A stretch of DNA of 64,000 nt from Epithemia pelagica (Eukaryota > Protista > Bacillariophyta), in NCBI GenBank assembly GCA_946965045.2, contig OX337240.1, positions 2,480,001 through 2,544,000 of the forward strand, given 5' to 3'. Shown piece after piece: positions 18,351 through 63,173 of the stretch (within the stretch, counting starts at the first letter, position 1; every line of letters begins with the position of its first letter). The position numbers were made by a program, and so were the translations under genes. The notes below the pieces were generated by a model that had not been told where the DNA came from, did not search any database, and worked only from the letters and a program-made list of their open reading frames with translations.

Positions 18351-19796
18351 ATGTCGTCGTCGTCTTCTGCTCCGCCGTCGCCTCCCGTCTTGATTGTCAA
18401 GAGTTTGGCCATTCCAGCTCTGTTGAGTGCGATTGCCTGTTATCAATTGCAAGAGCCCTTGAATGCGTTTGCCAGTTACTTTTTTGCCGCTTCGTTGCTC
18501 GATCAAACGGCCGTCTTGGGTTTGATCTTTGCCCTCTTGTTGGGGGTCTTGAGTTTGGCCTTGTCCCTCACCTTGGACGACTCCCACTCGACCAAGGCCA
18601 TGGTCGATCCCTTTGTGGCCACGCCCTTGCCGGCCAAGACGAGCAACAACAATGCCACGATTGTCTATCCCTTGCAAGCCTTGGCCAATGCCACGACGGA
18701 CAAGGAGCGTTTGGACTGCATGTATCCCATGTTGCGCGATGAATTGCTCGCCCATTTGCGCGATTGCAACGAATTGACGGAGGAAGCGGTGGACTGGTGC
18801 CAAGCCATGATGGATTACACCGTGCCCGGTGGCAAGTTGAATCGTGGGACCACCGTCTTGGCCGTCTTAAGGACCTTGCAAGGGGGACAATTGACCGAAT
18901 TACAAACGGCTCAAGCGGCCGTTTGTGGGTGGTCCTTGGAATTGTTGCAAGCCTTTTTCTTGGTGGCGGACGATGTCATGGACGACAGTAAAACGCGACG
19001 AGGACAACCCTGTTGGTTTCGACAACCTCATGTTGGATTGGTGGCTATTAACGATTCCTTTTTGTTGGAATCCTTTGTCTTGACCGTCTTGAAACGACAC
19101 TTTTATCAAGCTTCCTTGTTGGTGGTGGACAATGCCACGGAACGGGTGCGATTGCAAACCTTGTATGCCAGTCTCCTGGATCTCATGATGGATACCATTC
19201 AAAAGACGGAGGTGGGTCAATTGTTGGATTTGACCTCCCAACCGGCCAATGGCAAGATGGATTTGACGCGATTTACCTTGGAACGCTATCAAAGCATTGT
19301 CAAGTACAAGACGGCCTTTTATTCCTTTTATTTGCCCACCGCCATGGGCATGCTCCTGTCCGGCATTGCCGATGCCCAAGCCTATCGGTTGGCCCAAGAC
19401 ATTACCGTACAAATGGGCGAATACTTTCAAATTCAAGATGATTATTTGGATTGTTTTGGCGATCCGGCCGTCATTGGCAAAATTGGGACCGACATTCAAG
19501 AAAACAAGTGCAGTTGGCTCGTCGTACAAGCCTTGGACAAGTGTCCCGTCGACAGTACCGACAAGGGGGCCAAACAGGGCCGCAAAGTCTTGGAACAACA
19601 TTATGGACAATGGAACGATGGCAAAGTCGCCAAGGTGAAGCAATTGTACAAGGAATTGGACTTGCCAGCCGTTTTTGCCAAGTACGAAGAAGCCTCGTAT
19701 CAAGAATTGCAAACCAAAATTGCCCAAGCGGCCCATGTCATGCCCACGGCCGTCTTTGAAGAATTGTTGCACAAAATTTACAAACGATCCAAATAA
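18351..19796 (+). CDS. FPPS: Farnesyl diphosphate synthase with a hydrophobic N-terminal extension
   Basis: PGGKLNRG, first Asp-rich motif FFLVADDVMD..RRGQPCW, YKTAFYSFYLP, second Asp-rich motif FQIQDDYLD, and GKIGTDIQENKCSW. Start placed at MSSSS (18351) within ORF 18144..19796. Confidence 0.95.
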   Translation: MSSSSSAPPSPPVLIVKSLAIPALLSAIACYQLQEPLNAFASYFFAASLLDQTAVLGLIFALLLGVLSLALSLTLDDSHSTKAMVDPFVATPLPAKTSNNNATIVYPLQALANATTDKERLDCMYPMLRDELLAHLRDCNELTEEAVDWCQAMMDYTVPGGKLNRGTTVLAVLRTLQGGQLTELQTAQAAVCGWSLELLQAFFLVADDVMDDSKTRRGQPCWFRQPHVGLVAINDSFLLESFVLTVLKRHFYQASLLVVDNATERVRLQTLYASLLDLMMDTIQKTEVGQLLDLTSQPANGKMDLTRFTLERYQSIVKYKTAFYSFYLPTAMGMLLSGIADAQAYRLAQDITVQMGEYFQIQDDYLDCFGDPAVIGKIGTDIQENKCSWLVVQALDKCPVDSTDKGAKQGRKVLEQHYGQWNDGKVAKVKQLYKELDLPAVFAKYEEASYQELQTKIAQAAHVMPTAVFEELLHKIYKRSK

Positions 19797-37267: not shown

Positions 37268-39049
37268 ATGGCGGAGGCTTGGAACCGAATCACAAACGAC
37301 GATTACAAGTCGTGGCTTTCAGAGCGGCAGGTAACTGCCTTTGAATTTAATGCAGCCTCGCTTGCTGACCGTAGCGCTCTCCGCGAACAGTTCGATCAGC
37401 ATCAGCTGCGACGGGTTGCAGCAGCGTCACAACAGCAGCAACCGTTGACGCTGTACAACTTGGTGTTTCGAGCCATCCCATCGGGCAGCTCGGGTGTGCC
37501 CCACATCCATGAAGATCTTGAAGAGTTCCCCATGGAGGAATTAAAATTGTTGCAAGTGCAAGAGTACACCAAGCCGCTGTATCGTCGTCTCCATTTACCT
37601 CGGAGGAACGGAGAAATCCACTACAGCCGCGAAAATCAGGTGCAGGCTCATTTGGAGACTTTGGTTACTGACGTGATTGACAGCTGCAATTATGGCCTAA
37701 CAACAGACATAGAAGCGGCCTTGAATGGTCTTAAAGTGGATATTGGCTTTCTCCGAGACGAAAACGACGACCTTTGTGGCACAATGGAAGTCAAACAACC
37801 ATATAGAAGATATGCTCAACCTCCGGATCCAGATCCTATGACCCATCCGAAGGTTGTCACGCAGGTGTTATCTCAGATGATACCTCTTCGTACTATGTAT
37901 GGAGTGAAGAACGTGTACGGCATTCTTTCTACGTACTCATCATGGCGATTCTTTCGTTGGTTGCCCTCCGAGGAGTATGAAATTCGTACGGACGAATCAT
38001 TGGAAGAGTCTGAAATCACAAAAAAGCTGGAAAACCTTGCTATGTCTGATAATCAAATTGAGGAGGGCTCGTCGGTCGTAGAAGCGTCGCAATATCGTAC
38101 GCCCCGTAAGGCAAGGAGCGGCACCTTGGGACCTCGCATCTCTCCTCCGACGTCACCCAAGCCATATTGCGATTGTGATCAAACGGAACAAGACGGAGAC
38201 GAGGATCAAGAATCTGATGGTGACACTACGACTAAGCGTGGCATACTATATGCATCAGAGGTAATATCAGACGCTCCAAAGGCACTGCGAGTTTTGGCGT
38301 GGGTGTTGGGAGAAATGTACCTCTCCCCGAGGCAGTACGTCCCCTCCCATCAACGCGATTTCCTCTATGTTGTCAAGAAAGGAGAGGACGACATCGTAGG
38401 GGGCTACGAACGCGTTCGACACGACGCGGAGTTTTACAAAGGACGCATGCCACGAGTGGATGTTGAGAAACTGTATATCTTGGAAGAACTCGGCCACAGG
38501 TCGCATGGAAGAGTCTTTCGTGCAATGAGTAAGGGCGGCAATCTCTGCGTGATCAAGTACTTTGTCAAGTCCCAATACGCTCTGAACGAGAATGGCAAAC
38601 GCGTACAATTTGATGCAAGCGCTGCAGCACAGAAATCTGTTTCGTATTGGAACGCAGTATACGCCCACAACTGGCTACCAGCGGCAAGATTTGGGACATG
38701 GGGTGGGGGCGATGCTATCCTTATGCCTGATTTGGAGAAAATACCAGTGATGGAGGCAGAAGAGCGACTTTTTGTCATGAACAAGCTGGAAGAGACGATG
38801 AAAGAAAGGTTCCACCGGAGGGGCATCTGGCATGATGATCCGGCATGGCGCAATGTTGCACTTGTTCGCAACCAACTTGGTCGCATTACAAAAGTCTGCA
38901 TGATTGATTTGGAACCTGCCCGTATGATAGAGAAGGTTGAATTAGACAAGTGGGGGGAGTTTGAGACAATGTGGGGGAAGTTCCAGAAGGTGCTCGACGC
39001 AGATTGGGACAATTTCAAAGCTACACTATTGACAGGAACCTCACACTGA
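37268..39049 (+). CDS. CRN-like protein: short head + PD-(D/E)XK nuclease-like domain + protein kinase domain (copy 1)
   Basis: KVDIGFL...MEVKQP (D..ExK). Kinase motifs: ELGHRSHGRVF (Gly loop), CVIKYF, HDDPAWRNV (catalytic loop) and MIDLE (DFG equivalent). Confidence 0.7.
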   Translation: MAEAWNRITNDDYKSWLSERQVTAFEFNAASLADRSALREQFDQHQLRRVAAASQQQQPLTLYNLVFRAIPSGSSGVPHIHEDLEEFPMEELKLLQVQEYTKPLYRRLHLPRRNGEIHYSRENQVQAHLETLVTDVIDSCNYGLTTDIEAALNGLKVDIGFLRDENDDLCGTMEVKQPYRRYAQPPDPDPMTHPKVVTQVLSQMIPLRTMYGVKNVYGILSTYSSWRFFRWLPSEEYEIRTDESLEESEITKKLENLAMSDNQIEEGSSVVEASQYRTPRKARSGTLGPRISPPTSPKPYCDCDQTEQDGDEDQESDGDTTTKRGILYASEVISDAPKALRVLAWVLGEMYLSPRQYVPSHQRDFLYVVKKGEDDIVGGYERVRHDAEFYKGRMPRVDVEKLYILEELGHRSHGRVFRAMSKGGNLCVIKYFVKSQYALNENGKRVQFDASAAAQKSVSYWNAVYAHNWLPAARFGTWGGGDAILMPDLEKIPVMEAEERLFVMNKLEETMKERFHRRGIWHDDPAWRNVALVRNQLGRITKVCMIDLEPARMIEKVELDKWGEFETMWGKFQKVLDADWDNFKATLLTGTSH

Positions 39050-49232: not shown

Positions 49233-49844
49233 GTTAAAACAGACTTGACCAGTTGTTAAAGACTGCTAATAATAGTCTTCTGGGAACTAAAAGTCCATCA
49301 TTTCACTATTCCCCATGCCCCATGGTTTCAAGGTCTCTGGGTGGTATGGCACAAGAGTATGTTGTTTCATGTCCTTGCGGTGTCAATGACACAATGCTCT
49401 GTTAGAGGTTATTGCTGTGGTAGGATATGATTGCGACTGCAGGACCATGCTCTGTTGAAGACAGCATTGCAATTGTGGTTCCCAAGGCAGACAAGGCAAA
49501 GGAGTTCATTGGACGCTGTTTGGCCATGATTGTGGCAATGGAAGTATTGGTCCACAAGTCTATCGTGTCGCTCTTGTTTTGGGTCTTGTCGCTGGTGCGG
49601 ATGGGTGTCACGGAATCGTTCCATACCGCCACGTGCGGGTGTCGAGGATGGGTCATCGGTTTGGTTGTTGTTTCATGGATTTCCACGTTATTGGTAGTCA
49701 GTGGTTCGACCAATAACAGGGTCCGCGCCTGCCATATAAAATGCCACAAGGGTCCCTTGGGGTAGTAGAGATAGGAGCGACATGTCGGTGGCGATTGCAA
49801 GGGGCCATCGGTGATGTTACAACCACAGCAAGATGGGCCTCGTG

Positions 49845-49904
49845 TTGTTTGTGTGAGTTTTTGTCAAAGTCGAGATTTTGAGGATCGCGCCTTGTGGGTG
49901 AGTA
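49845..49904. mobile_element. Inner half of an older TIR relic related to the 49912-53390 element (outer half at 60835-60872)
   Basis: GAGTTTTTGTCAA..GATCGCGCCTTGTGGGTGAG aligns with GAGTTTTGTATCAA..GTCGCGCCTTGGGGGTGAG of the right TIR at 53291-53338. Confidence 0.55.
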
Positions 49905-50213
49905 TCAGGCCTACCCCCCAGCGGGGGTGAGATTTTTGCAGTCTGTCCGTCAATCATTTCAGTGATTCTCATTCTCACCCCCAAGGCGCGACGTCCAAAA
50001 TCAGCGATTTCCCGAGGTTGATACAAAACCCATTGCACCTCAACACATCCAACACGGAGCCAAACTTGTGAGCGTTGGTGCATGCCTCCTGAACGTTTTA
50101 AAGCCCACCGAATTGTTTCATGACCCTGTCCTCACCTCCAAGGACGTCATACCGCGTTGATTTTGCCTCCCAAACGCCTTCTCGTACCTTCCCACCACTG
50201 TAATACAAGCAAC

Positions 50214-51254
50214 ATGTCCGCCACAAGCAACCCAAGGCAAGAGGTGACCGAGAACACCCGTCATGGACCCCTTCCTGTACCCCGAACCTTGCCCGAACCC
50301 ATTTCCAATGGTCATGACCCTTTCTGCAACCGCACGTCTCTTCAAGAGGCGGTAATTTCTGCTTTTACCGACTGGCACGGCAAGACTGCCCGACATTGGC
50401 AGGTTGACGCCTGCAAAGAGGTTATCAAACGACATATTGAGCCACCAACACAAGACCTTCTTCGTCCGCTCCTCCTTGTTCGATCCACTGGTGGCGGAAA
50501 ATCAGCTGTCCGTGACATTTCTGGCTTTATGTGCGGGGGGATAACCATCACGATCGTCCCACTTCTAAGTTTGGCAGCGGATCAAACGTCGAAGCTATCC
50601 CAGCTTTCATTGGGCCAAGACCTTTCACATCGCTTGAACGTCTTCAACCTCGACGTGCTCCGATCTGCACACCTCAACAATGAACTCCGTGACAAACTGC
50701 AGGCCCTACCAAAAGAATCCTCTACAACAGTGTCTCTTTTTTCTTCACCACAAAAAATCACCAACGATCCATTGTGGCAACAAACCATTGCAAAGTGTTG
50801 CAAGCAAGGAACCCTGCGTCTTATTGCCGTGGATGAATGCCACTTGTAGGCCGCACACGGTATGGAATTCCGAGAAGAATTCGGTCACTTGGAACGATGT
50901 CTTTTCCGTATTGCCCAAAAAAACAGCCGACATCCTGTCCCTGTTTTGTTTATGACTGCCACTGCCTCACAGGCCATGCTTCACGATCTCCAGTTGTTGA
51001 CTGGTTTGTCCTTCCACCCCGAGAAAGATTTGATATGGCCCCACAATCATTCTGGAGTACAGAGGCGAAACATTTTCATCGACTTGTCGTTTAAAGATTC
51101 GCCAAGTCGAAGAATCAAAGCTGACCTTGTCAAGACCTGCAAAACTCCCGGCAACAGGAAACTAATTGTTTACTCCAATTCAAGAAAGGCCATCATCAAT
51201 CTACATGCTCAAAGCCGTCAATTGCTCAACGTCATGGAGATCCCATGTTATTGA
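50214..51254 (+). pseudogene. RecQ-family SF2 helicase, N-terminal lobe only, with one in-frame TAG (50847-50849)
   Basis: RHWQVDA, STGGGKS (motif I), IVPLLSLAADQ (Ia), SSPQKI, AVDECHL*AAHGMEFR (motif II plus aromatic loop), FMTATA (III) and IVYSNSRK (IV). Motifs V and VI are missing. Confidence 0.85.
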
Positions 51255-53229
51255 ACTTTCCAAAACAATCTTCCATTCTCGTCAATAATTGTCTATCCAT
51301 CATTTCGCAGAAGGGCTTCACAACGTCCGGTTCAATAAGAGGTGGGATTGGGGCCTCCAATTGGGCCAAGGCGTCGTTGAGGCGTCCGACAACATCCTGA
51401 TGAAGCTCAAGGGCTTGATCGTGCCGTTGTTTTACGTCAAACTGTTGCCAAATGTTGCGTAATTCCGCCAGACTATAGCGGTCTCCTGGTGTTTCTTGGA
51501 CTATCCTGTGTAGAAGGGTCAATCTATCTCCACCAGAAGCTTTCAGTCGCTTGAAGATTGTGTACCAGCTCCTTTCCGGGTGGTAGTCGGCCTGAAGGAA
51601 CAGTGCTTGCGGATAGTTAAAGATCTCGAAATAGGATAGGAGTTGTTGGATGCAATCGGTGGGAGGGGAAACAAGGTTGCAACCAGACGATGGTGAGAAA
51701 ACAGGAAACTTGAGGTATAATCCGTTCTGTGATCTTTCGGACATTGCAGCGATGATATCGTTGTATGTCTTGGTGCCAATTACTTTTCGGATAACACCGG
51801 AAGGATTTAAGTGCACATATCCACAAAGTTGATTGTAGAGATTGCCCTGGCACATGACTTGAGGAATGTGTTGTGATTGGTGAGTGTCTCGCGCAACATC
51901 CAACCAACCTTTTGCATAACGTGGTGGTAGGAGTTCGCTTCGGAAGAACAAGACGATGGGTGTTCCTACCTCCAAGAACCAAATATCTTCCAGAAAGAGC
52001 GTTCGCAAGGCAAATGAAGTAACCATTTGAATTGGGGCAGCCGAAGTACTTGATAGACCAGGCACAGCATCCGACATCAGGGACGAGGAGGGCAGTGGTA
52101 CACTGTCGCTGTCACTAGAGGATCGCTTTCGTTTGTTGGTGTTGTTATAACGACGTTGTTTTGCTGTGCCAGTGGGAGACCGTGTGACACCCTTCGTGTA
52201 GTTCTTAGCACGTCGCATCAAAGGACCACAGTGATTGGAAACCAACGACAGTGAAGATTCATCATCCGGAGTAGAAGACACAAGAACCATTGGAGGGTTT
52301 TTTTTTTCCGAGTCACCTGGGGTTCGACAAGAAAGAGGGGGGTGGCGTCGCAATGGAACCAAAAAAGAACCCTCCGTGATTTTGGGTACTTGTAACTTCA
52401 GGTTTGGATGTATATAGGGTTGCATTGCCGAAGTGGGTGGCCGACGTGTGAGATTAAGACCGGAACCGAGGAGTTCAAGGGATGACGACGAATCAGTTCC
52501 GGTGGTTTGTGCAGTCGGAGGCGCGGCGGCAGTAGAAACAGTGTACGGAGTGGTCGCTTGCTGAGGGTTGTTGTGCATGGTTGTGGTTGACGTTTGCTCA
52601 TTTATTTCGGTTCCCAAAGTACCAGCTGGTGTGGAAGCGTCCGCCTCTTTTGTACTCTGCACATTCATGGGCTTGGGAGGGGAAGATTGCGTACCAAATT
52701 GAACAAGTCCAATGGAATCGCGACGGTGCAAAACGTGAAAGGATGAAGACAAGACCGTGGAAGTTGAAGTGTTGCTGTTGTTTGAAGCGGAAGCTGCGGT
52801 GGTCTGACGTTGTGGTGGCACTGTGGGAAATAACATAGAGGGTTGAAAGACCGGTGGAGGGATCGCATGGAAGCGTGGTGTAGTTGACACCGACGAGATT
52901 GAACTGTCCATTGCTCTTGTCGAGGACGGTTCAGACCTGTTGGAAGGTTGTCCGTTGCTTCCTGGTTGAGTCCGGCAGATTTGCGGAGTTTCGTACGGAA
53001 CACCACAGGAAGCAGAGGGCAACAAAGCAACGGACGAGGTCGCGTTGCCGGTGGAGACAGGGTCGGTGTTGGCTTCTTGAGATTGAGGTGCAGATGTAGT
53101 TTCGGCGATGGGTCTGCTATCATCTGAATTCTGCGTTGTATAAGGCGGTGCGGAGGCACTACGGGTGCCGAAGGCTTTCCTGACAGCCTTTTGAGACCTT
53201 CGGGTTCGCTTGTGAGAGGATGTCGACAT
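51232..53229 (-). CDS. Unknown 665 aa protein inside the TIR element (candidate N-terminal part of a transposase or accessory protein)
   Basis: The ORF starts ~60 bp inside the right TIR. The N-terminal half is disordered and the C-terminal ~270 aa looks globular. It ends exactly where the helicase is truncated. No catalytic motif recognised. Confidence 0.55.
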   Translation of the reverse strand: MSTSSHKRTRRSQKAVRKAFGTRSASAPPYTTQNSDDSRPIAETTSAPQSQEANTDPVSTGNATSSVALLPSASCGVPYETPQICRTQPGSNGQPSNRSEPSSTRAMDSSISSVSTTPRFHAIPPPVFQPSMLFPTVPPQRQTTAASASNNSNTSTSTVLSSSFHVLHRRDSIGLVQFGTQSSPPKPMNVQSTKEADASTPAGTLGTEINEQTSTTTMHNNPQQATTPYTVSTAAAPPTAQTTGTDSSSSLELLGSGLNLTRRPPTSAMQPYIHPNLKLQVPKITEGSFLVPLRRHPPLSCRTPGDSEKKNPPMVLVSSTPDDESSLSLVSNHCGPLMRRAKNYTKGVTRSPTGTAKQRRYNNTNKRKRSSSDSDSVPLPSSSLMSDAVPGLSSTSAAPIQMVTSFALRTLFLEDIWFLEVGTPIVLFFRSELLPPRYAKGWLDVARDTHQSQHIPQVMCQGNLYNQLCGYVHLNPSGVIRKVIGTKTYNDIIAAMSERSQNGLYLKFPVFSPSSGCNLVSPPTDCIQQLLSYFEIFNYPQALFLQADYHPERSWYTIFKRLKASGGDRLTLLHRIVQETPGDRYSLAELRNIWQQFDVKQRHDQALELHQDVVGRLNDALAQLEAPIPPLIEPDVVKPFCEMMDRQLLTRMEDCFGKFNNMGSP

Positions 53230-53724
53230 TATAGACTTTGTTATCAACCACTGCACCTCCACCACCGTGATGAATGCATGTGTGGTTTTGGAGTTTTGTA
53301 TCAACCTCGGGGACTTTCCGTCGCGCCTTGGGGGTGAGAATAGAGATTCTTCTTTTTGTGCGACCAGATTCTCGCCCCTGCTTGGGGGTAGTATCAGGCC
53401 GTTCCTTACGGCAAACCAAACCCCTCAAATTTCACCGTCTGGACGTCATATATCCGGGTTTTTGGGCTTTTCAGGTTTGGTTCAAACTGATTCGAACCAA
53501 ACCTGAAATCAGGTTTGGCGCGTTTACCAAACCTGAAACACACTAGGGATAAAGTTTTCGTTATGCTACTGTAATAATTTCCTACAGTTTCGAATTCGAC
53601 TTGGCATGCGTGCGTTCAACTCCAACGGTCACACGTCCCCCCATTTCTCATGAAATTAGACGATATGTCTTTTGTACGATGGAATTCTTTTAGTACAATA
53701 TTCAATTTAACGCCAATCGTAATC

Positions 53725-53774
53725 GAGTAGCGCATAGCTGTCTCCCATATATGGGAGACAGCTATGCGCTACTC
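53725..53774. repeat. Perfect 50 bp palindrome in the piggyBac left end
   Basis: GAGTAGCGCATAGCTGTCTCCCAT-AT-ATGGGAGACAGCTATGCGCTACTC. The core ATGGGAGACAGC recurs three times (one inverted) at ~57500-57560. Confidence 0.9.
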
Positions 53775-54075
53775 CCTTAACTTTCACTTCAAATAACTTC
53801 ATCAAAATCCACTTTCATCCAAATCTAACTTCATCGTTCGATAGATCTTACAATTCTGAACAACTTCATGTATGATACTCTACAGTAGAAATGAAGTCAT
53901 AATGGCGATATTTCGCTTTGAAAAATTGGCGATTTCCCTCATTTTTGTCCATTTTCAGTTTCCTTCGCCCGAAGCCCAACTTGGTGCCCTTATATGTTCG
54001 GTCTCTCTGAACCGATCGTTGCAGGACTCTCCATTCTGGAAGTCTATATAGTGAAGAAGACTTGGACGCAAGGAA

Positions 54076-57000
54076 ATGTCGTCTCAACCTTTTCCCATTG
54101 AGTGGGACGACCATGAGTCGACACCACCCGATTTATCGCAACCGCTCATCGATCAAGACGCAGACCAACCCGTCGTAACTCAAGCCAGTGACACTCAAAC
54201 CGCAGCACCTCCAGTCGACAATTCAACAGCCGGAGAGCCTAATGCCCCGATGGAGCTCCCACCGGAGCTAGAGAGTTTTGTCGCACATTTGCCTGGACGA
54301 CGACAATCTTCCCGCCCGAGATCAAGATTTTCATACGCTAAGCGGAGTTTCGTTGCGATGGACGACTTCTGGATCCATGAAAATTTCAGGGAAGATTTCC
54401 GTCGTCGGTTTCGACCCAATCTTACCGACCGTCACATTCCTCTTCTCGGAAAAATTGTGGAATGTCCCTCGAAGCAGAATGACAATATATATGCGATTGT
54501 CTGGGACAAACGCAGTATTTCGAGTTTGAACATTCCCGACAATTGGATCAAGACACAGTTCACCTCGTCGAAAGCAGTCAAAGCCAAACTTCGTCACTTC
54601 ATCGAAGTCTACAATCCCGCCAATCTGCCATTTCAACCATCACAATCGACCCAACCATCCCAATCCCAACAGTTGCAACCAACAGGTCAGTCGGCTTCAC
54701 AACAAACAAACAACACCTCCACGACGGCATCTCAACAGAACAATCACACTCAAGACGACAACAATCCTACCAACAACAGCACTGTAGACGACAACAATCC
54801 TACCAACAACAGGAATGCACAAGAACCTCCTCAACCTCCTTCCACAGCAGAGCGTGCACGCCGCCGAGCCGCCATTAGGAATGTACCAGATGCGTCTTTG
54901 AGGCGATCTCCTCGTCGTCATTCGACTTCTACATCGAACATGCCATCGACTCAAGAGCGTGCACAGGGTCGTGCTGCACTCATGACTGCACCAGAAGGAG
55001 TGCTATCTCCAAGTACTCAAGGAGGTACTCCAACTAACGAAGTTGCAACTCGTCTCTTCAGAAGTGCTAGTACTGGTGGCTCCTCCAGGACGACACGACA
55101 GCAGCGGGTAAATAACAACAACAATTCCACCGAGGCCTCCGACGACGAACCAAATAATGACAACTCTTTATCAGACGAAGATGAATATGGTGGCTATGAT
55201 TTAGATGTAAACGAAACTGTGCACAGGGATAGCGATCCATTGTTGGAATACAATGACAGTGACGACGAGGATAACCCTGACGAAGAGAATGCTTCCTCAG
55301 GATCGGACAACGAAGATCCCAACAATTCAACAAATTTGAAGGTGTTGATCGATAATTTACACTTCCACTTCAAGGAAGTTGATTCGTCTGATAATGCTTT
55401 CTCATGGGTTGGGCAGGAGCGCAACAACAGATCGATGTTTCGTGGTGGAGACGGTCTAAAAGTGGGGATTGCAGATGTATTTCATACTCCCTTTGACTGT
55501 CTTCGAGTTGTTGGAGGATTGTCTAAATCCATCATTTCGGACATGGCTGCGGCAACGAATCAATATTTCCGCAACAAAATCCGTCCAAACCTAATGGGAC
55601 GACGAGGATATTTTCATTCTCAGAAATGGAGAGACGTGACAATGCAAGAAATGACTGGGTTCTTGGTATCATCTTGATGATGTCCTTGAGACCCGTTGAT
55701 GGTGGTGGTTACGCAGCTTACTTTTCCAACTCCAACATGATGTACAGCCTGGGAACTGCAATTCCAACAATGGAAATTGCAGATAGTGCTGGTTGGGCAT
55801 CAAAATACATGCGCCTTGCTCGATTCCGACAAATCAGAGGAGCATTCCACCCCGAATCGAAAGAAGCTGGACGGGGAGGTGACAAATGTTACCAACTGCG
55901 AAGACTCATCCAGGCTGTAAATTCTGCGTCAAGACGATCTTTCCAAATTCCACAAGATTTGGCATTCGACGAAGGAGGTATTGGATGCCGTTCGAGGTAC
56001 TGCCCGGTCAGGCAGTACAACAAGGACAAACCAGCCAAGTTCCGCGTTGATTTCTTCATCCTGGCTTCGTCCACTAGCTATGCAATCTTGCATTTGGACG
56101 TATATCAGGGAAAGAATGCTACTAATTCATACATCCGACACGAGGCACAACGTCTTCCTACAACAATGAAGGCTGTTGTGAATGCGTGTTACGCGCTGGA
56201 ATTGAACAACGAAACCCGTGGATTCCGCCACTTATCCATGGATAATAGGTATGCCGCTCCACAACTCCTGGTGATCTTGCGAGATCGACTGAAAGTCCTT
56301 GCTACTGGTACTGTTCGTGTAAACCGCGTTGGATGGAACAAGGTTCTCATGGATTTGAAAAAAACAAAGACCAATCGTGGAACGATGAAACTGGGACATG
56401 ATGAAGTGAACGGAATCCTAATCGGGCAATGGGTAGACTCTAAGGTGGTTAATTTTGTTTCAAGTTACGAGAATGTTGGGACAGGGCAACTACAACGCCA
56501 AGTTGGTCAAACGAAGAAAGACTTCAGGTGCCCCCAAGCATTGATACGATACCAAGACAACATGGGGGGGATTGACCGTGGCGACCAAATGCGGTCACAA
56601 ATGGGCGGATTTGCCACACATGGCCATTTCAAGAAATGGTATAAAAAAACTGCCCTCGGTATCATGGATATTATGTTGCTCAATGCTCTCATAGCCTGGA
56701 ACATGTCCGCTGGGGATAGAATTCGTTCAAGGCGTACAAAGCTTTCAAGACATGCTTTCTACACGTGTGTCGCACAAGCTATGTGCAGTTACGAAGATAC
56801 AGAAGAGGTTGATGCCTTGGCGCGGCGGACCCAACAACCTTCACAACCAAGTTGTGAAGATGGACACTTTCCAATCCCTTTGGAGGGCAACAAACGGTTG
56901 GCGTGTGCTGTTTGTTTGTTGGAGCACCGTTGGAAGAAGAAAACATTGGGGATGAAAGGATTGTACTCGAATGTCGGTCAATGTGCCAAATGTGGAATTG

Positions 57001-57323
57001 TCACACATTTGGTGAATTCCACAGATAAAAGAGAGGATGGTTGGAAGATTCATAAGCTACCACAATTCGCAGGTAATACCTGTTTCGAGATTCTGCACTC
57101 AATTCAAGGCAGGGAGATATTCATGTGCCGTCCGGCTGATGGAGGGGACAGCAGATATAAGTACACAACAAAGAAAAATCACCCTCTTGTATTGGATTTG
57201 AGAGAGAAACATGGTCTGCCGCCGGAGTTCACAAGAAAGAGAAGACGGATTGAAGCCTCGGCCCCTATGGAAGAAGACAACAAGAGTGAGAATGAAAGTG
57301 GTGAGGAAATCCATGAATTGTAG
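54076..57323 (+). pseudogene. piggyBac (DDE_Tnp_1_7 / PGBD-like) transposase, ~1080 aa, with one -1 frameshift at ~55662
   Basis: EMTGF/LGIILMM spans the shift. The catalytic triad contexts are LAFDEGG, SMDNRYAA and MGGIDRGDQ, followed by a C-terminal Cys-rich domain (CAVC..CAKC..H..C). Confidence 0.9.
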
Positions 57324-58137
57324 AAGCAGCATTATATAAGAGACATAGTAAACACAGACGACACAGACTCACCTTGGACAGGTCATTCATAGGTTACTTG
57401 TGCCATGGTTGACATGGATCGATGATCTTGGCTGTGTTGAATGTCACAAAAATGAGACCTGCGTTTCAAGGTTAAAACAGCCTCTGTTAAGGCGCTCGCA
57501 TGGGAGACAGCAAATTCGAGCATCTGGCTGACTCCCATAAAATTTATGGGACACAGCTATTTGATACTCCGATAAGCTTAAAACCCGTTCTTTACGATTG
57601 GCGTTAATGAAGTCAAATGGGGGGAAGTTGGGGGCAGGGCTGTGTAGTACGATAGTCCAATTTTCGACGAAGTCCCTTACTTTGTACTGTACTTCACCGA
57701 CTTTACGCATTCCCTTAGTATAGTCCCCCTCTCTCTCTCAAGGGACTGCCAGTCCCTCAGTCCATTCCCTATAGTCACTCACAACCGACTATAGTCTCTA
57801 CCGTCATCCCCCCCCCCCCCCCCCCCAGCCTTCAATCGTACTATATTCCCTCTCTCGAGTCCCACCAGTCTCTCATATCGTACTTTAAGTCCTAAAGTCA
57901 AGTACCTCCAGCCAAATATATAGACTGTATAGTACAAAATCACTCCTCATCTCCATATGAAACGACTACAACCATGATATCATGTGTTTATCATTCCAAA
58001 TCAACACAAGAAAACAGATGAGGATAATCACAACACAGAGGTACGTTACCCATATCTTGGTTGCTTCGCCTCTCTTCAACAATCAAACCATTGTCCTCTC
58101 TTATCTTGTCTCATACAAGGAGACGAGGTCGAATCAA

Positions 58138-60760
58138 ATGGAAGGAGTCCAAGATACCGTTTGGACATTGGAAGATCCTTCCAGGAGGGATCCCCCTTCC
58201 TCCAACAAGAACAAATCTTCTTCCAACAAGAACAAGCCACGGCCCTCATCCAGTAAGAAGACGACTTCCAGTTCAAAGAAGAAAAAGAAGAAGAAGCCTC
58301 CTCCTGCAGGTTCCAACGAATTGAAACGAAAACCCTCTGCACTCGAAGCCGAGAAGAAAATTGTTGAGAAAGAGCTTGCACCAGTTGTGGAAGCCAAAGA
58401 TGATTTCTTGGCAAATGAGAAATCTCTTGTTCCTCTTCTTGATTCTCCAAATCCATTATTCTTCGGCCATCCTAGTTGTTCACCGTACTGGCGTTGGATC
58501 CTTCATGTTGACTGGCCGGTGTTTGAACAATATCTGATCGATAACTCGGATGATATTCCCCAAACCCCCGGCATTCTCAAGCTGATAAACAACATGAAGA
58601 CCAAAACCAAAATAGGAGACATGAAGAATCTCAAGTCGGCATTGACTCCCCAAGCCAAGAATAAAGCCATGAAAGAGAAATACTCAAATCTTGTCCGTTA
58701 TGTTGTCATCTGCCCACGCTGTTTTGCGAACAAAGACAAACCACTGGACGAATGTATCCTACTTTGTGGGCTTAACAAAACATCCAACATAGCAACTCAT
58801 ATCGGCAAGTACCACAAAGATGTTCAAATTCAAGACGACGCCGATGATCCCTCTCCGATGAAAAGCCAAGGCACGCTAAGCTCCATGGTCATAAAGGATG
58901 CATCCAAATCTACTGCTTCTGCGGAACTAAGGCAGCTCATGTATCGGTTCATCAATGACTGTGCACTACCGGCAATTACGGCCGAGAAAAAAGAATTCCG
59001 AGATCTCATCCGGTACGCAATCAACAACAGTGCTGCTCTCCGCGACACACCGGCAGAGATCATGAGCCGGTGGGAAATTTCCAAACTTCGTATCTCTTCC
59101 TACGAAAGTTTTTTCGGTGTGGCGACGAACCTTATCAATGCCTGTCGCTCTGAATACGAACGATTGTGCTACCAGAAGGTTCCTTTTATCTCCGTGTGCC
59201 CTGATATTTGGCAAGCGAGGGACCATGACGTCCTTGGGGTTACAATAATGTTCATAGACCCTCACAACTGCGAGGTCTATCGCATCCCCATTGGTCTTGC
59301 AGAATGCAAAGGACACGCAGCAACGGACGTGGCAAACCTAACTGATGTTCTCCTTCTTGGCGTTGGCATCACTACAGGAGATCTGTCGGCCTCTGTGAAT
59401 GACAACACGACGGCCACTGTGTTGGCGGGCAAGTACATAGTGGGCCAAAAGGATAAGACTGGAAAGTGTGATATGCACAAGGCTGAACTTGTGCTAAAGC
59501 ACGCCACGGGGTTAGTTCAACGCTACCACAATCGCCAGCTCATGGATTCTAACACGGAGTTTCTTGAGCTATGGCAAATCTTCAAACAATTTGCGTCGTG
59601 GTTGACCAGCAAAAAATCTCCAAAGCGAATGAGAAAGTTTCGAGAGGCCTGTATTGCGATGGGAATGAAGATTGTTTCTATTCCACTCCCAAATGACACT
59701 CGAGTTGCAGGACTTATCCTAACAATTCAAGCCTTGCTACGATGCAAATTTGTCATGGATAACTACTCTACTCTGACTGCTTTCCGGAGCGACCCAAAGT
59801 TCAAAAAGCTATATCCAGAGGAAAAGGAATGGAAGTTACTTGCTCAGAACGAGGGAATCCTTGCTCCCTTGAAACAAGTGTCCATGTCTTTACAATCTGA
59901 TGAACCAGGAGCAAGTTCCGCGGCCCTGCTTGAAATCTATTGCGCTTATTTTCAAGCAACAACTATGCGCAGTGACAGTAAAGAGTATGGTGGTGTCTCC
60001 TGCTTGAATGTGTCTAGTGGAGCCGAGACTCAATGGGACGCTCGTGATACCATGGACGATCTAGACAGACTGCGCGATCCGATTTCTCTACAAGGATTTA
60101 GAGGCTGGACCACGCCGCCTAATTCGCCGGATTATCGCAGAGTACAAGCATTACTTATTCCATCATGACGAAGATGGAATAAAAGCTGTTTGTGCTAATC
60201 CTCTATTGGGAAATGTATACGAGAATATGTTCGTGAATTTCGGCGTTTTTGATCAAGACACCGTCAAAGAGTGTCGTAGGATCATCATCAAAGACGTGGT
60301 CGCCAAATTCAGCAACAAGAGTGTCTCTCAGATTGGACTTGCGCTCTCTAAACAAGGGGCCACGGGGAGAGAAGGTGATGACGATGAGAATGTTGAAGAA
60401 CAGGCGATGTCCCCTTCCAGAAAAACTATTCGGCACAAAACCCGTGATGTATTTGCGAACATGAGGCGCTCGCATGACCTACAACAACAAGCGTTACTGC
60501 ATCTTAGTGGCAAGGCATCCAACGCTGCCTCTGAAAACGAAATGGTGATGGCCTTACAGAAAGCTTGTACATCATGCTACGACGAATTTCGCGAACATTG
60601 CAAGGGTCACATAGACAACCATTGGGATCAAATGATGGAAGACTATGGAACTCTAGCCTTCTATAAGGCTCGCGACCGCTGGAACGATAATCAGAAGAGA
60701 AAGTCAGAGAGTTGTCAACTCTCTGACTTTGGTTTGGTTGAGTGTAAGGACGGCAAATAA
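58138..60760 (+). pseudogene. hAT transposase with BED-like zinc finger; +1 frameshift at ~60095 and apparent C-terminal truncation
   Basis: CPRC..NIATHIGKYH, FINDCALP..EFRDL, CPDIWQ (first D), NDN, CDMH (CxxH), PNDTRV and LAPLKQVSMSLQ. The C-terminal catalytic E / dimerisation motif was not seen before the TIR. Confidence 0.85.
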
Positions 60761-60834
60761 TTGCGCCTTTTTCCAAACAAATCCTGGAAAGGTCTTCACA
60801 GGTTTGGTTTGGTTTGCCGTAAGGAACGGCCTGA

Positions 60835-60872
60835 GGCCGTTCGACCAGGACTCACCCTTCCGCTAGGGGGTA
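60835..60872. mobile_element. Outer half of the older Academ-like TIR relic
   Basis: CGACCAGGACTCACCCTTCCGCTAGGGGGTA aligns with CGACCAGATTCTCGCCCCTGCTTGGGGGTA (53361-53390). Confidence 0.6.
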
Positions 60873-61100
60873 CGTCCTACTGAAATTGTATAGTGTTTCT
60901 AGCAGAGGTATGTCCGGAGTCTTTGTTGTTTTCCCACCCCCAGACCCCCTTTAGCCTGCCGGCTTACCCGACTCCGTTCTTTGAACTCAGTCGAACACAA
61001 CCAATAGTCACTTCTTTCTTGTGCATGACGATTAACAGTCTCAAGTCTTTTGTTTTGTTGTTGTGTTGTTGTTGCTGAAATATTATTAGTTCATTTGACC

Positions 61101-63173
61101 ATGTCAGACCCTGCCAGTAAATCAAACATGCCTGACACGATGGAGGAAACAGATGCGACGCCCGTCACCCCTGTCAGGAGATCTCCCGATATGGCTGCAG
61201 TGGTAGAAACCATGGCTTCATTGCTGGCAGCTCCTGATGACAATGCATCCGCCTTGAGGACTGATCTTGAGGCCATGTTCTCGTCGTGGAAAGTCACTCG
61301 TTGGGAAGACTTGATGGCTGTAAAGGACACGGACGTGGAAGATTATATTGCAGACAAAAAGCCTGAACAGCTCTCCCCCCTTATCATCGAGAGGCGTTTG
61401 GGTTACCTGGTCCGGTATGCCAAGCTTGATAAGCCCTTGACTAGCGCTCTCACGATGGCTTCTGTGATTCGGGAGGTGGATAAACAGCAGCATCAGCTGC
61501 GACGGGTTGCAGCAGCGTCACAACAGCAGCAACCGTTGACGCTGTACAACTTGGTGTTTCGAGCCATCCCAACGGGCAGCTCGGGTGTGCCCCACATCCA
61601 TGAAGATCTTGAAGAGTTCCGCATGGAGGAATTACAATTGTTGCAAGTGCAAGAGTACACCAAGCCGCTGATTCGTCGTCTCCATTTACCTCGGGGGAAG
61701 GGAAAAATCTACTACAGCCGCGAAAATCAGGTGCAGGCTCATTTGGAGACTTTGGTTACTGACGTGATTGACAGCTGCAAATATGGCCTAACAACAGACA
61801 CAGAAGCGGCCTTGAACGGACTGAAAGTGGATATTGGCTTTCTCCGGGACGACAACGACGACCTTTGTGGCACAATGGAAGTCAAACAACCATATAGAAG
61901 ATTAGCTCAACCTCCGGATCCAGATCCTATGACCCATCCGAAGGTTGTCACGCAGGTGTTATCTCAGATGATACCACTTCGCACTGTGTATGGAGTGAAG
62001 AACGTGTACGGCATTCTTTCTACGTACTCATCATGGCGATTCTTTCGTTGGTTGCCCTCCGAGGAGGATGAAATTCGTGCGGACGAATCATTGGAAGAGT
62101 CTGAAATCACAAAAAAGCTGGAAAACCTTGGTATGTCTGATAATAAAATTGAGGAGGGCTCGTCGGTCGTAGAAGCGTCGCAATATCGTACGCCCCGTAA
62201 GGCAAGGAGCGGCACCTTGGGACCTCGCAACTCTCCTCCGACGTCACCCAAGCCATATTGCGACTGTGATCAAACGGAACAAGACGGAGACGAGGATCAA
62301 GAATCTGATGGTGACACTACGACTAAGCGTGGCATACTATATGCATCAGAGGTAATATCAGACGCTCCAAAGGCACTGCGAGTTTTGGCGTGGGTGTTGG
62401 GAGAAATGTACCGCTCCCCGAGGCAGTACGTCCCCTCCCATCAACGCGATTTCCTCTATGTTGTCAAGAAAGGGGAGGACGACATCGTAGGGGGCTACGA
62501 ACGCGTTCCACACGACGCGGAGTTTTACAAAGGACGCATGCCACGATTGGATGTTGAGAAACTGTATATCTTGGAAGAACTCGGCCACAGGTCGCATGGA
62601 AGAGTCTTTCGTGCAATGAGTAAGGGCGGCAATCTCTGCGTGATCAAGTACTTTGTCAAGTCCCAATACGCTCTGAACGAGAATGGCAAACGCGTACAAT
62701 TTGATGCAAGAGCTGCAGCACAGAAATCTGTTTCGTATTGGAACGCAGTATACGCCCACAACTGGCTACCAGCGGCAAGATTTGGGACATGGGGTGGGGG
62801 CGATGCTATCCTTATGCCTGATTTGGAGAAAATACCAGTGATGGAGGCAGAAGAGCGAGTTGTTGTCATGAACAAGCTGGAAGAGACGATGAAAGAAAGG
62901 TTCCACCGGAGGGGCATCTGGCATGATGATCCGGCATGGCGCAATGTTGCACTTGTTCGCAACCAACTTGGTCGCATTACAAAAGTCTGCATGATTGATT
63001 TGGAACCTGCCCGTATGATAGAGAAGGTTGAATCAGACAAGTGGGGGGAGTTTAAGACAATGTGGGGGGAGTTCCAGAAGGTGCTCGACGCAGATTGGGA
63101 CAATTTCAAAGCTACCTTTATCACTCCTCGTCGTGCCATTCCCTACTTTCACCCCCAAATAGATAAGCCCTAA
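61101..63173 (+). CDS. CRN-like nuclease-kinase, copy 2, with a different ~130 aa N-terminal head
   Basis: Nearly identical to 37268..39049 from QHQLRRVAAAS onward (61488 vs 37397). The head is unrelated, and the C-terminal end is altered by an insertion. Confidence 0.7.
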   Translation: MSDPASKSNMPDTMEETDATPVTPVRRSPDMAAVVETMASLLAAPDDNASALRTDLEAMFSSWKVTRWEDLMAVKDTDVEDYIADKKPEQLSPLIIERRLGYLVRYAKLDKPLTSALTMASVIREVDKQQHQLRRVAAASQQQQPLTLYNLVFRAIPTGSSGVPHIHEDLEEFRMEELQLLQVQEYTKPLIRRLHLPRGKGKIYYSRENQVQAHLETLVTDVIDSCKYGLTTDTEAALNGLKVDIGFLRDDNDDLCGTMEVKQPYRRLAQPPDPDPMTHPKVVTQVLSQMIPLRTVYGVKNVYGILSTYSSWRFFRWLPSEEDEIRADESLEESEITKKLENLGMSDNKIEEGSSVVEASQYRTPRKARSGTLGPRNSPPTSPKPYCDCDQTEQDGDEDQESDGDTTTKRGILYASEVISDAPKALRVLAWVLGEMYRSPRQYVPSHQRDFLYVVKKGEDDIVGGYERVPHDAEFYKGRMPRLDVEKLYILEELGHRSHGRVFRAMSKGGNLCVIKYFVKSQYALNENGKRVQFDARAAAQKSVSYWNAVYAHNWLPAARFGTWGGGDAILMPDLEKIPVMEAEERVVVMNKLEETMKERFHRRGIWHDDPAWRNVALVRNQLGRITKVCMIDLEPARMIEKVESDKWGEFKTMWGEFQKVLDADWDNFKATFITPRRAIPYFHPQIDKP

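Follow-up and report, generated by a model that had tools for sequence, protein, structure and literature searches.

The 3479-bp unit at 49912-53390 of the window (the whole 64-kb stretch of DNA that was analyzed, contig ctg1347l of ENA assembly ERZ21939226) is probably a dead, internally deleted copy of a diatom family of cut-and-paste DNA transposons that, by its features, fits AcademH. To our knowledge, cut-and-paste transposons that encode a helicase are uncommon and little understood, and descriptions of AcademH are confined to animals and fungi. Because relatives of 7.5-8.1 kb with the same ends occur in the same assembly, we regard the window copy as an internally deleted member of a helicase-encoding family with terminal inverted repeats (TIRs), as a reading of the sequence alone had proposed. 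That reading also took the host for a probable diatom, and it is one, close to Entomoneis.

The element, its ends, and its relatives in the assembly

The element begins with TACCCCCCAGCGGGGGTGAG and ends with ...CTCGCCCCTGCTTGGGGGTA, giving TACCCCC...GGGGGTA tips, and is flanked on both sides by a perfect 10-bp duplication, GTATCAGGCC (Table 1). Its inverted ends are imperfect, with a mean identity of 75% across ~120 nt and two 10-nt gaps on the right side. Within them, one perfect block of 23 nt pairs 49971-49993 with 53319-53341, and another of 19 nt pairs 50011-50029 with 53293-53311; each block occurs at two sites only in the 64-kb window (0 of 100 shuffles). The TIR-bounded unit, its identical blocks, and the duplication had all been named in the sequence-only reading and are present in the sequence. 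The heptamer TCACCCC forms an inverted pair at positions 13 and 64 of the left end, and the same arrangement is found in other copies.

Table 1. Coordinates of the element, its parts, and neighboring features in the window
Feature	Position	Strand	Remarks
Whole element	49912..53390	.	3479-bp internally deleted, non-autonomous copy; tips common to six related copies
Left TSD copy	49902..49911	.	GTATCAGGCC, 10/10 identical to 53391-53400
Right TSD copy	53391..53400	.	GTATCAGGCC, 10 bp
Left inverted end	49912..50029	+	Tip palindrome TACCCCCCAGCGGGGGTGAG, then 23-nt block 49971-49993, then 19-nt block 50011-50029
Right inverted end	53293..53390	-	Two 10-nt gaps relative to left end; A-to-G in tip heptamer (CTCGCCCC)
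RecQ-like SF2 helicase 5′ fragment	50214..51242	+	ATG 50214; first ~345 codons; tblastn homology
Internal deletion junction	51242..51244	.	Homology to full-length proteins stops (helicase 51242, transposase 51244)
Open 665-codon ORF	51232..53229	-	ATG 53229, stop 51232; N-terminal ~680 residues of family transposase; lacks catalytic core
Right-end subterminal piece of older family copy (L005-like)	49841..49904	+	Local alignment score 75
Unrelated 7.4-kb element, perfect 29-nt TIRs	53394..60834	.	Parts the two pieces of the older right end
Tip of older right end (...CGACCAGGACTCACCCTTCCGCTAGGGGGTA)	60835..60872	+	Comparison with family ends

Six other TIR-bounded copies come from other contigs of the assembly (L001, L002, L003, L005, L009, and L010); they share the TACCCCCC...GGGGGTA tips with the window copy. 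Their target-site duplications (TSDs) are 10 bp in L001 (TTGAATCTCG), L010 (AGATTCGGAT), and L002 (one mismatch) and 9 bp in L005 and L009; that of L003 is 9 bp, or 10 bp with one mismatch. Since L001 and L010 have unambiguous 10-bp TSDs beside the same TA...TA ends, the alternative reading of the window duplication as 8 bp lacks support. Lengths of the related copies are 7.5-8.1 kb, reaching 9.8 kb where a nested insert is present. L002 is interrupted by ~2.3 kb, and its right end, with matching TSD, lies at 19029. All six have the layout transposase -> <- helicase, and both genes are open in at least three (L005, L009, and L010). The family helicases are 590-770 aa, with DEAD and Helicase_C domains in the helicase ORFs of all six copies, and the transposases are ~1650-1830 aa. 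As had been suspected, the family is multi-copy: ERZ21939226 holds no fewer than 18 helicase genes, along with 15 or more transposase genes or fragments. Tblastn found no other family coding sequence within the 64-kb window.

In the window copy, a helicase fragment on the plus strand and the 665-codon ORF on the minus strand converge. The sequence-only reading had them meeting at ~51240, where the helicase breaks off; because the match to full-length relatives stops at 51242 in the helicase and at 51244 in the other ORF, we place a single junction at ~51243. The ~4.3 kb lost in one deletion comprises the 3′ part of the helicase, the intergenic spacer, and the transposase from ~residue 669 to its end. 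The window copy is 4326 bp shorter than L009 (7805 bp), which together with L010 has the ends most similar to its own.

The helicase fragment aligns to residues 29-385 of the 726-aa L003 helicase and 134-436 of the 636-aa L001 helicase. It is 58-66% identical to family helicases by tblastn, and its nearest relatives are 71-73% identical. DECHL represents its motif II region, and an in-frame TAG (50847-50849) lies opposite a Tyr conserved in five relatives. When the window's own ORFs were scanned against Pfam, the helicase fragment gave a weak, sub-threshold DEAD match. Among the matches listed, there was no autonomous parent of the window copy, as identity reached at most 73% for the helicase and 55% for the transposase fragment (44-55% for the nearest). 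One of the searches was restricted by protein length, which would have concealed a full-length parent, but two others with effectively no such restriction did not yield one either.

Transposase and helicase

The 665-codon ORF contains a S/T/P-rich region, a basic stretch, and a conserved N-terminal domain, while its final three codons and stop come from helicase DNA. Its identity to N-terminal parts of proteins of 1488-1829 aa from the same assembly is 39-55%, with 50-55% in the conserved domain (residues ~430-662). It starts with MSTSSHKR and its relatives with MSSSSHKR; past the break in the window copy, the relatives' transposase runs on as ...CFGRFNNIF.... Pfam gave no domain match for the 665-aa ORF itself, the identity of which came from homologues only. 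The suggestion that this ORF might be the N-terminal part of a transposase was therefore borne out by the full-length family proteins.

The family transposase matches Pfam DUF6589, with E = 2e-8 for P0004 and values up to 1.5e-21 among distant relatives. An AlphaFold model of residues 480-1420 of family protein P0070 (941 residues) had a pLDDT of 86 and a pTM of 0.82. In this model, D281 lies on a beta strand, D524 just after a beta strand, and E779 on a helix; the three residues (D760, D1003, and E1258 in P0070 numbering) are 100% conserved. An exhaustive VIA-align search with model residues 273-809 returned DDE enzymes as the best matches: the hAT transposase Hermes (PDB 8edg; Z 8.4, 281 residues aligned), retroviral integrases (Z 7.8-6.2), Tn5 (7.4), the P element (7.3), ISCth4 (6.3), and RAG1 (5.7). 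As Z-scores of 6-8 are singly common for VIA-align, the case for a DDE enzyme rests on the consistency of these matches and on the conserved triad. Comparison of the transposase sequence with all PDB chains gave nothing at E ≤ 1, and Foldseek with the 941-residue model gave nothing at E ≤ 0.001.

Like Hermes, the modeled protein has an RNase H-like core in which a long all-alpha insertion precedes the catalytic E; the P element and RAG1/Transib are further DDE enzymes in which a large insertion separates the second D from the E. Unlike Hermes, with which it has no sequence similarity, the family transposase has no hAT dimerisation domain and is ~3x larger, with TSDs of 9-10 bp instead of 8 bp. 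We conclude that DUF6589 is very probably a DDE transposase core, with a predicted RNase H-like fold and with D760, D1003, and E1258 of P0070 as the predicted catalytic residues. A transposase fold in longer versions of the ORF had been named beforehand as a test of the sequence-only reading, and such a fold is what the P0070 model has. All three residues lie past the break in the window copy, and thus the whole catalytic core falls in the deleted part.

Might the 665-codon ORF nonetheless have been kept as functional, its product a catalytically dead fragment that binds family ends and represses transposition, as KP of P elements does? Its 665 codons are open from a conserved start, whereas the adjoining helicase fragment carries a stop; it retains the conserved N-terminal domain (~430-662) and the basic stretch; and the many autonomous relatives in the genome would be possible targets. 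However, chance alone would leave a frame open in a young copy, which the perfect TSD fits, and the ends of the window copy's lineage share just 72-80% identity with those of the intact copies sampled. We consider a retained repressor function very improbable, and treat the ORF as a transposase fragment.

In a search of PDB sequences with the element helicase, all 36 matches were members of the RecQ family (BLM, RECQ1, WRN, RECQ5, and RecQ; E values from 1e-11 to 3e-5). Element helicases share the two RecA-like lobes (DEAD and Helicase_C) of these cellular proteins, including bacterial RecQ, but are only ~25% identical to them and always adjoin a transposase gene inside TIRs. They also lack the RecQ-Zn (PF16124), RQC (PF09382), and HRDC (PF00570) domains, which are present in the cellular RecQ matches. 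In a helicase tree, a long branch (SH-aLRT 100) split 31 cellular RecQ rows, all from outside this diatom, from 34 element-linked rows. The window fragment was nested in a 19-member clade from its own genome (SH-aLRT 100). The phylogeny proposed as a check on the sequence-only reading thus sets the element helicases apart from cellular RecQ.

AcademH and other transposon groups

AcademH is the helicase-encoding lineage of the Academ superfamily, reported so far from animals and fungi. Its marks, as given in a passage of PMC10045372 that cites Kojima 2020, are TIRs, TSDs of 9 or 10 bp, and a helicase, while AcademX has TSDs of 3-4 bp and an XPG nuclease in place of the helicase (PMC10045372). 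The window copy and the six related copies have TIRs (TACCCCC...GGGGGTA tips on ~120-bp imperfect ends) and TSDs of 9-10 bp (with the mismatch in L002). A SF2 helicase lies beside the transposase in the six copies, and the window copy retains its 5′ part only. A Pfam scan of ~30 family proteins found neither XPG_N nor XPG_I. Because the family has the TIRs, the 9-10 bp TSDs, and the helicase by which AcademH is defined in print, we prefer an AcademH-like assignment, one made by shared features and not by transposase homology with a reference Academ. Of the two options in the sequence-only reading, AcademH-like or a new family, the former fits better.

The family also resembles AcademH in consisting of TIR elements of several kb with a large DDE-type transposase and a separate SF2 (DEAD/Helicase_C) helicase. 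It differs in its host: AcademH has so far come from animals and fungi, but this family is from a diatom and its relatives from Skeletonema and a dictyochophyte. The window copy further differs in having lost the catalytic core and roughly half of the helicase. AcademX is likewise TIR-bounded and presumably belongs to the same transposase superfamily, but the diatom family has longer TSDs, a helicase, and no XPG nuclease. Academ is most abundant in rust fungi (PMC5751038), and DUF6589 is enriched in rust fungi (bioRxiv 10.1101/2025.10.24.684071); as a link between DUF6589 and Academ, this shared enrichment is only circumstantial.

We weighed several other groups. Helitrons have neither TIRs nor a TSD and encode a Rep/PIF1-type helicase protein; they were rejected, as TIRs and TSDs are present here and the helicase is RecQ-like SF2 rather than PIF1, without Helitron_like_N. 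MULE/MuDR elements likewise combine long TIRs with duplications of 9-10 bp and a pair of convergent genes, the second of which in MuDR, mudrB, is not a helicase. The sequence-only reading had drawn an analogy with MuDR, which stands for the layout of two convergent genes read from TIRs but does not extend to the proteins: the full-length copies contain no MULE, DBD_Tnp_Mut, SWIM, or Transposase_mut Pfam domain, and DUF6589 is the sole family match. Although IS256-type ISCth4 is among the structural matches, it is outscored by Hermes, integrases, Tn5, and the P element. Despite the similar TSD length and gene layout, a Mutator-like element is thus extremely improbable. Kolobok, including helicase-bearing KolobokH, has a TTAA target-site duplication (PMC9587614) and was rejected, since the TSDs here are 9-10 bp of varied sequence.

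Distant relatives with 24-26% transposase identity, from metagenomes (L006 and L007) and Skeletonema marinoi (L011), show this gene pair in this layout too, as does P0212, in which transposase and helicase form one fused product. In the distant L006 lineage, the TSD is 8 bp and the tips are CAC...GTG. The right end of the Skeletonema copy is abutted by another short element, which obscures its TSD. The named relatives, from searches that carry few names, are all stramenopile algae (Skeletonema marinoi and Pedinella sp.); those in Skeletonema marinoi are annotated "hypothetical protein," and relatives also occur in a dictyochophyte transcriptome. A profile search for fungal or animal relatives gave, among the matches listed, only copies from ERZ21939226, and cluster look-ups of family proteins gave no fungal names.

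The algal names, the lack of a named fungal or animal protein among them, and the sister lineage with its different TSD and tips would also suit helicase-coupled DDE transposons of ochrophyte algae that make up a superfamily or deep lineage of their own, as yet undescribed, and merely resemble AcademH. None of the papers searched joins Academ with diatoms. However, missing fungal names are weak evidence in searches that carry few names, and a large DDE transposase with a RecQ-like SF2 helicase, TIRs, and 9-10 bp TSDs is the AcademH set in the passage of PMC10045372. In addition, the DUF6589 model draws mostly on fungal proteins. The group in which the preprint reports DUF6589 enrichment is that with the top Academ abundance (PMC5751038). 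We therefore consider a separate lineage unlikely and retain the AcademH-like assignment.

Origin, surroundings, and significance of the copy

A full element of the family measures 7.5-8.1 kb, with ~120-bp imperfect inverted ends and convergent genes for a transposase and a RecQ-like SF2 helicase. The TCACCCC heptamers (positions 13 and ~64) are likely transposase-binding sites, and integration duplicates 9-10 bp of target. In the window copy, one deletion of ~4.3 kb joined helicase codon ~345 to transposase codon ~662, taking the catalytic core and the helicase C-terminal lobe; the helicase remnant also carries one nonsense codon. Because the core and the lobe are gone, and given the nonsense codon, the window copy is unable to move by itself. 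Both ends and a perfect TSD are kept, and it was therefore inserted by a normal transposition event. In principle, a related autonomous copy could move it in trans. Internally deleted copies of DNA transposons usually arise when gap repair is aborted following an excision. Like the deletion derivatives Ds (from Ac) and KP (from P), the window copy has intact ends and TSD, a deleted catalytic part, and autonomous relatives in the genome; unlike them, it has no close autonomous parent that we could find (helicase, 71-73%; transposase N terminus, 44-55%).

The element lies in a nest of transposons. As the sequence-only reading had noticed, a diverged terminus of the same family is nearby: 49841-49904 aligned to the right-end subterminal part of a related copy with a score of 75 (maximum in 200 shuffles, 42), with the motif CTCACCCACAAGGCGCG at 49886-49902, and the corresponding tip lies at 60835-60872. 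Tblastn detected no coding remnant of the family upstream of 49841-49904. The unrelated element between the two pieces contains a piggyBac-type DDE_Tnp_1_7 ORF (55626-57320), and its left tip supplies seven of the 10 bases in the site that the studied element targeted. Because the target site straddles that junction, the studied element was inserted after the unrelated element had split the older terminus. The window copy is thus useful mainly as an insertion-order marker in the nest.

Three of the seven copies are inserted at tips of other transposons' inverted repeats. A further reading, which we consider quite unlikely, is that the elements with a DUF6589 transposase and a RecQ-like helicase in ochrophyte algae (Skeletonema marinoi, the Entomoneis-like diatom studied here, Pedinella transcripts, and numerous contigs of marine metagenomes) represent a deep lineage that falls outside the Academ clades described so far and also tends to insert at such TIR tips. 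In that case, the helicase might assist the transposase in opening or recognising structured, palindromic DNA ends.

As a textbook deletion derivative, the window copy carries little weight by itself. Among its relatives, L005, L009, and L010 are intact copies for functional tests, and annotators gain a handle in DUF6589, which is very probably the core of a DDE transposase. The family looks recently active, given its 18 or more helicase genes and the several copies that have both genes open. The finding is an extension of a known kind of transposon to a new host, not a new mechanism. The presence of a diverse family of AcademH design in a diatom would widen the host range of such elements to photosynthetic stramenopiles.

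Window element and its full-size relatives

The sequence-only reading had described a 3479-bp TIR-bounded unit flanked by a 10-bp duplication. The unit was found exactly, with GTATCAGGCC perfect on both sides. Its inverted ends are ~120 nt each and 75% identical overall, with two 10-nt gaps in the right end; the identical 23- and 19-bp blocks reported within the TIRs are both perfect in the aligned ends and have no further occurrence in the 64-kb window (0/100 shuffles). The proposed convergence of a RecQ-like helicase frame and a 665-aa ORF was likewise recovered. The 665-aa product is recorded for contig ctg1347l (1.41 Mb) of ENA assembly ERZ21939226. A GMP synthase on a second contig of this assembly shares 89% identity with the Entomoneis paludosa enzyme and clusters with Entomoneis sp. 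CCMP467, which makes the host a raphid pennate diatom near Entomoneis and bears out the "probable diatom" of the sequence-only reading.

Six proteins matched the conserved C-terminal region of the 665-aa ORF (50-54% identity); all six belong to the same assembly and extend far past the position where the window ORF stops. From the loci of these and further matches, on other contigs of the genome, we recovered six bounded copies with 9-10 bp target-site duplications (TSDs), so that other TIR-bounded copies do exist. All copies start with TACCCCC(C/A)AG and end with GGGGGTA, and in all of them a very long ORF and a helicase ORF read inward from opposite ends. Both genes are open in L005 (1673 aa and 677 aa), L009 (1746 and 588) and L010 (1829 and 623). 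For this family, at least 18 helicase genes, with 52-97% mutual identity, and no fewer than 15 transposase genes or gene fragments were counted in the assembly, in line with the suggestion that the family is multi-copy. The family is also diverse, and its intact ORFs and clean duplications point to recent activity.

In nearly all copies each end contains TCACCCC as an inverted heptamer pair, at positions 13 and ~64; these heptamers are candidate transposase-binding sites. The elements in which the pair was noted at the two ends are the window element, L001, L002, L005, L009 and L010; at the right end of the window element, the tip heptamer has been lost by an A-to-G change, and two stretches of 10 nt are missing. 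The element tip is itself a small palindrome, CCCCC(N3-5)GGGGG, which could form a hairpin. In L002, ~2.3 kb splits the right inverted end (L002:16690-18970), with the true tip and matching TSD at 19029.

Tblastn alignments of full-length proteins from the other copies were confined, within the window, to this element. The transposase alignment covers residues 3 to ~680 and stops at base 51244, while the helicase alignment (residues 29-385 of 726 for the L003 copy, or 134-436 of 636 for the L001 copy) stops at 51242. That homology to both proteins stops at 51242/51244 shows a single deletion with one junction, at 51243 +/- 1, which removed ~4.3 kb from the window copy; the size deficit relative to L009 is 7805 - 3479 = 4326 bp. 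Missing are the C-terminal part of the helicase, the spacer and the transposase from residue ~669 to the end, and the final three codons and stop of the 665-aa ORF are helicase DNA. Relatives of 7.5-8.1 kb with the same ends thus bear out the view of the window element as an internally deleted family member; the break in the helicase, previously put at ~51240 where the two ORFs meet, shifts by only a few bases, and the 665-aa ORF does correspond to the N-terminal part of the transposase. The in-frame TAG of the helicase stands in place of a Tyr conserved in five relatives (DECHL-Y-A). A close parent of the window copy was not found: the best helicases are 71-73% identical and the transposase N-termini 44-55%. 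Compared with the ends of L009 and L010, those of the window element show 72-80% identity.

Features of the window and bounded copies of the family at other loci of the same assembly
Feature	Location	Size or strand	Details
Window element	49912-53390	3479 bp	5' start TACCCCCCAGCGGGGGTGAG, 3' end ...CCCCTGCTTGGGGGTA
Target-site duplication of window element	49902-49911 and 53391-53400	10 bp	GTATCAGGCC, perfect direct repeat
Perfect block in inverted ends	49971-49993 / 53319-53341	23 nt	
Perfect block in inverted ends	50011-50029 / 53293-53311	19 nt	
Helicase-like frame	ATG 50214	+	one in-frame TAG at 50847-50849
665-codon ORF	ATG 53229 to stop 51232	-	converges on helicase-like frame
Older L005-like right end, subterminal part	49841-49904		left flank of window element
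Older L005-like right end, tip	60835-60872		
Second element	53394-60834	7.4 kb	perfect 29-nt TIRs (TCAGGCCGTTCCTTACGGCAAACCAAACC)
ORF of second element	54076-55677		
ORF of second element	55626-57323		piggyBac-type DDE_Tnp_1_7 (E 5e-38)
Third ORF of second element	57982-60168	728 aa	
Long window ORF	37268-39046	593 aa	C-terminal DUF5898 (E ~3e-9)
Long window ORF	61050-63170	707 aa	C-terminal DUF5898 (E ~3e-9)
Copy at L001	9834-17646	7813 bp	TSD TTGAATCTCG (10 bp)
Copy at L002	9242-19029	9788 bp, including ~2.3 kb insert	TSD CCGC(A/G)CCAAA (10 bp, one mismatch)
Copy at L003	8909-16394	7486 bp	TSD CCCCAAGCG (9 bp, or 10 bp with one mismatch)
Copy at L005	5858-13383	7526 bp	TSD TGAGTCCAT (9 bp)
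Copy at L009	8405-16209	7805 bp	TSD AGCAACCAA (9 bp)
Copy at L010	8510-16576	8067 bp	TSD AGATTCGGAT (10 bp)

Helicase and transposase

The helicase contains the Pfam domains DEAD and Helicase_C, and 36/36 of its PDB sequence matches are RecQ-family helicases. The RecQ Zn-binding, RQC and HRDC domains of the cellular RecQ matches are absent from the element helicases. A maximum-likelihood tree was built from 65 sequences, 31 of them cellular RecQ (the diatom's own RecQ genes not among them). It gave no support to the possibility that the element helicases are cellular RecQ orthologs: a long branch (SH-aLRT 100) separates all 31 cellular proteins from all element-linked helicases. The 19 helicases of this genome, the window fragment included, form one clade (SH-aLRT 100). 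Helicases linked to distant DUF6589 transposases (that of metagenome locus L006 and the helicase half of P0212, a transposase-helicase product) fall on the element side, on long branches whose exact place is unsure.

The sole Pfam match of the long protein is DUF6589 (E 2e-8 in the transposase P0004, up to 1.5e-21 in distant relatives), and an exhaustive HMMER search returned 443 relatives at E <= 0.001. An AlphaFold model of residues 480-1420 of a related transposase, P0070, built on 64 of the 443, is of good confidence, with a pLDDT of 86 and a pTM of 0.82. The alignment contains three acidic positions that are 100% conserved, corresponding to D281, D524 and E779 in the model (D760, D1003 and E1258 in P0070). 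In the model, D281 is in a beta strand, D524 just past a beta strand and E779 in a helix, with ~250 mostly helical residues between the second D and the E; this predicted placement is canonical for a DDE triad in an RNase H-like fold. Foldseek gave no significant match with the model. In an exhaustive VIA-align search nearly all of the highest-ranked structures, aligned over model residues 273-809, were DDE enzymes: Hermes (Z 8.4, 281 residues aligned), SIV, HIV, MMTV and other integrases (Z 7.8-6.2), Tn5 (Z 7.4), P element (Z 7.3, 355 residues aligned), ISCth4 (Z 6.3) and RAG1 (Z 5.7), the individual Z-scores falling in the range that the tool terms common. Because the structural matches are consistent and the triad is conserved, the clear reading is that the long protein is a predicted DDE transposase. 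Longer versions of the 665-aa ORF, as had been suspected, carry a predicted RNase H-like DDE core with a conserved triad; the window ORF ends ~130 residues short of its start.

Transposon nest and insertion sites

The left flank of the window element derives from an older, L005-like copy and represents the subterminal part of its right end; the tip of that end lies beyond the 7.4-kb element, which sits between the two parts. These two pieces are the diverged same-family terminus previously noticed nearby. The target site of the window element, GTA|TCAGGCC, spans the joint of the old terminus and the 7.4-kb element, so that the window copy inserted last, after the 7.4-kb element had entered the old copy. 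No obvious TSD was seen around the 7.4-kb element, and the 8-nt string GGCCGTTC is present both in its left TIR and immediately outside its right end.

The L003 copy lies 12 bp inside the tip of another same-family copy (L003:16388 onward), and the L001 copy is 12 bp from a 777-bp TIR element (L001:9035-9811). With the window copy, 3/7 insertions are at or next to a transposon terminus, a count uncorrected for TE density that is suggestive of a preference for transposon termini as targets, or simply of TE-rich DNA. The two DUF5898 ORFs of the window appear to belong to a repeated gene family of the host diatom.

Distant relatives and classification

The same convergent gene pair occurs on the eukaryotic metagenome contigs L006 and L007, with transposases 24-26% identical, tips CACACTGTAGT and an 8-bp TSD (ACTTACTC in L006). 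This distant sister lineage (L006:7636-14998, L007, L011:6618-12095), with transposase and helicase converging between CAC(A/G)CTGTAGT tips, occurs in marine metagenomes and Skeletonema marinoi. At the Skeletonema locus, L011, a truncated helicase converges with the transposase gene. Two relatives from this centric diatom, KAK1743298.1 and KAK1733536.1, are annotated as "hypothetical proteins", and others are among transcripts of the dictyochophyte Pedinella sp. CCMP2098. P0212 (L008:6001-11034, ENA ERZ25039508) joins DUF6589 (E 1.5e-21), DEAD and Helicase_C in one 1677-aa product, either a natural transposase-helicase fusion or a merged gene call.

PMC10045372 (citing Kojima 2020, Mob DNA 11:15) ties the TSD difference between AcademH (9 or 10 bp) and its sister lineage AcademX (3-4 bp) to the encoded helicase versus nuclease, and both that article and PMC10799480 assign AcademH to animals and fungi. 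Academ abundance is highest in Pucciniomycotina (PMC5751038), a group that reportedly also shows DUF6589 enrichment (bioRxiv 10.1101/2025.10.24.684071). Like AcademH, the diatom family has TIRs, 9-10 bp TSDs and a helicase gene next to that of a large DDE transposase; no XPG domain was found. The earlier assignment to an AcademH-like, helicase-encoding DNA transposon therefore fits, and the window element is supported as a non-autonomous deletion derivative, judged AcademH-type from these shared features rather than from sequence comparison with reference Academ transposases. MULE was rejected because the full-length proteins contain no MULE-type domain, Kolobok because the TSDs are 9-10 bp instead of TTAA, and Helitron because TIRs and TSDs are present and the helicase is RecQ-like. 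Among the papers searched, none pairs Academ with diatoms. The novelty lies in the hosts, diatoms and other ochrophytes, from which this known type of transposon is now recorded, and not in the mechanism.
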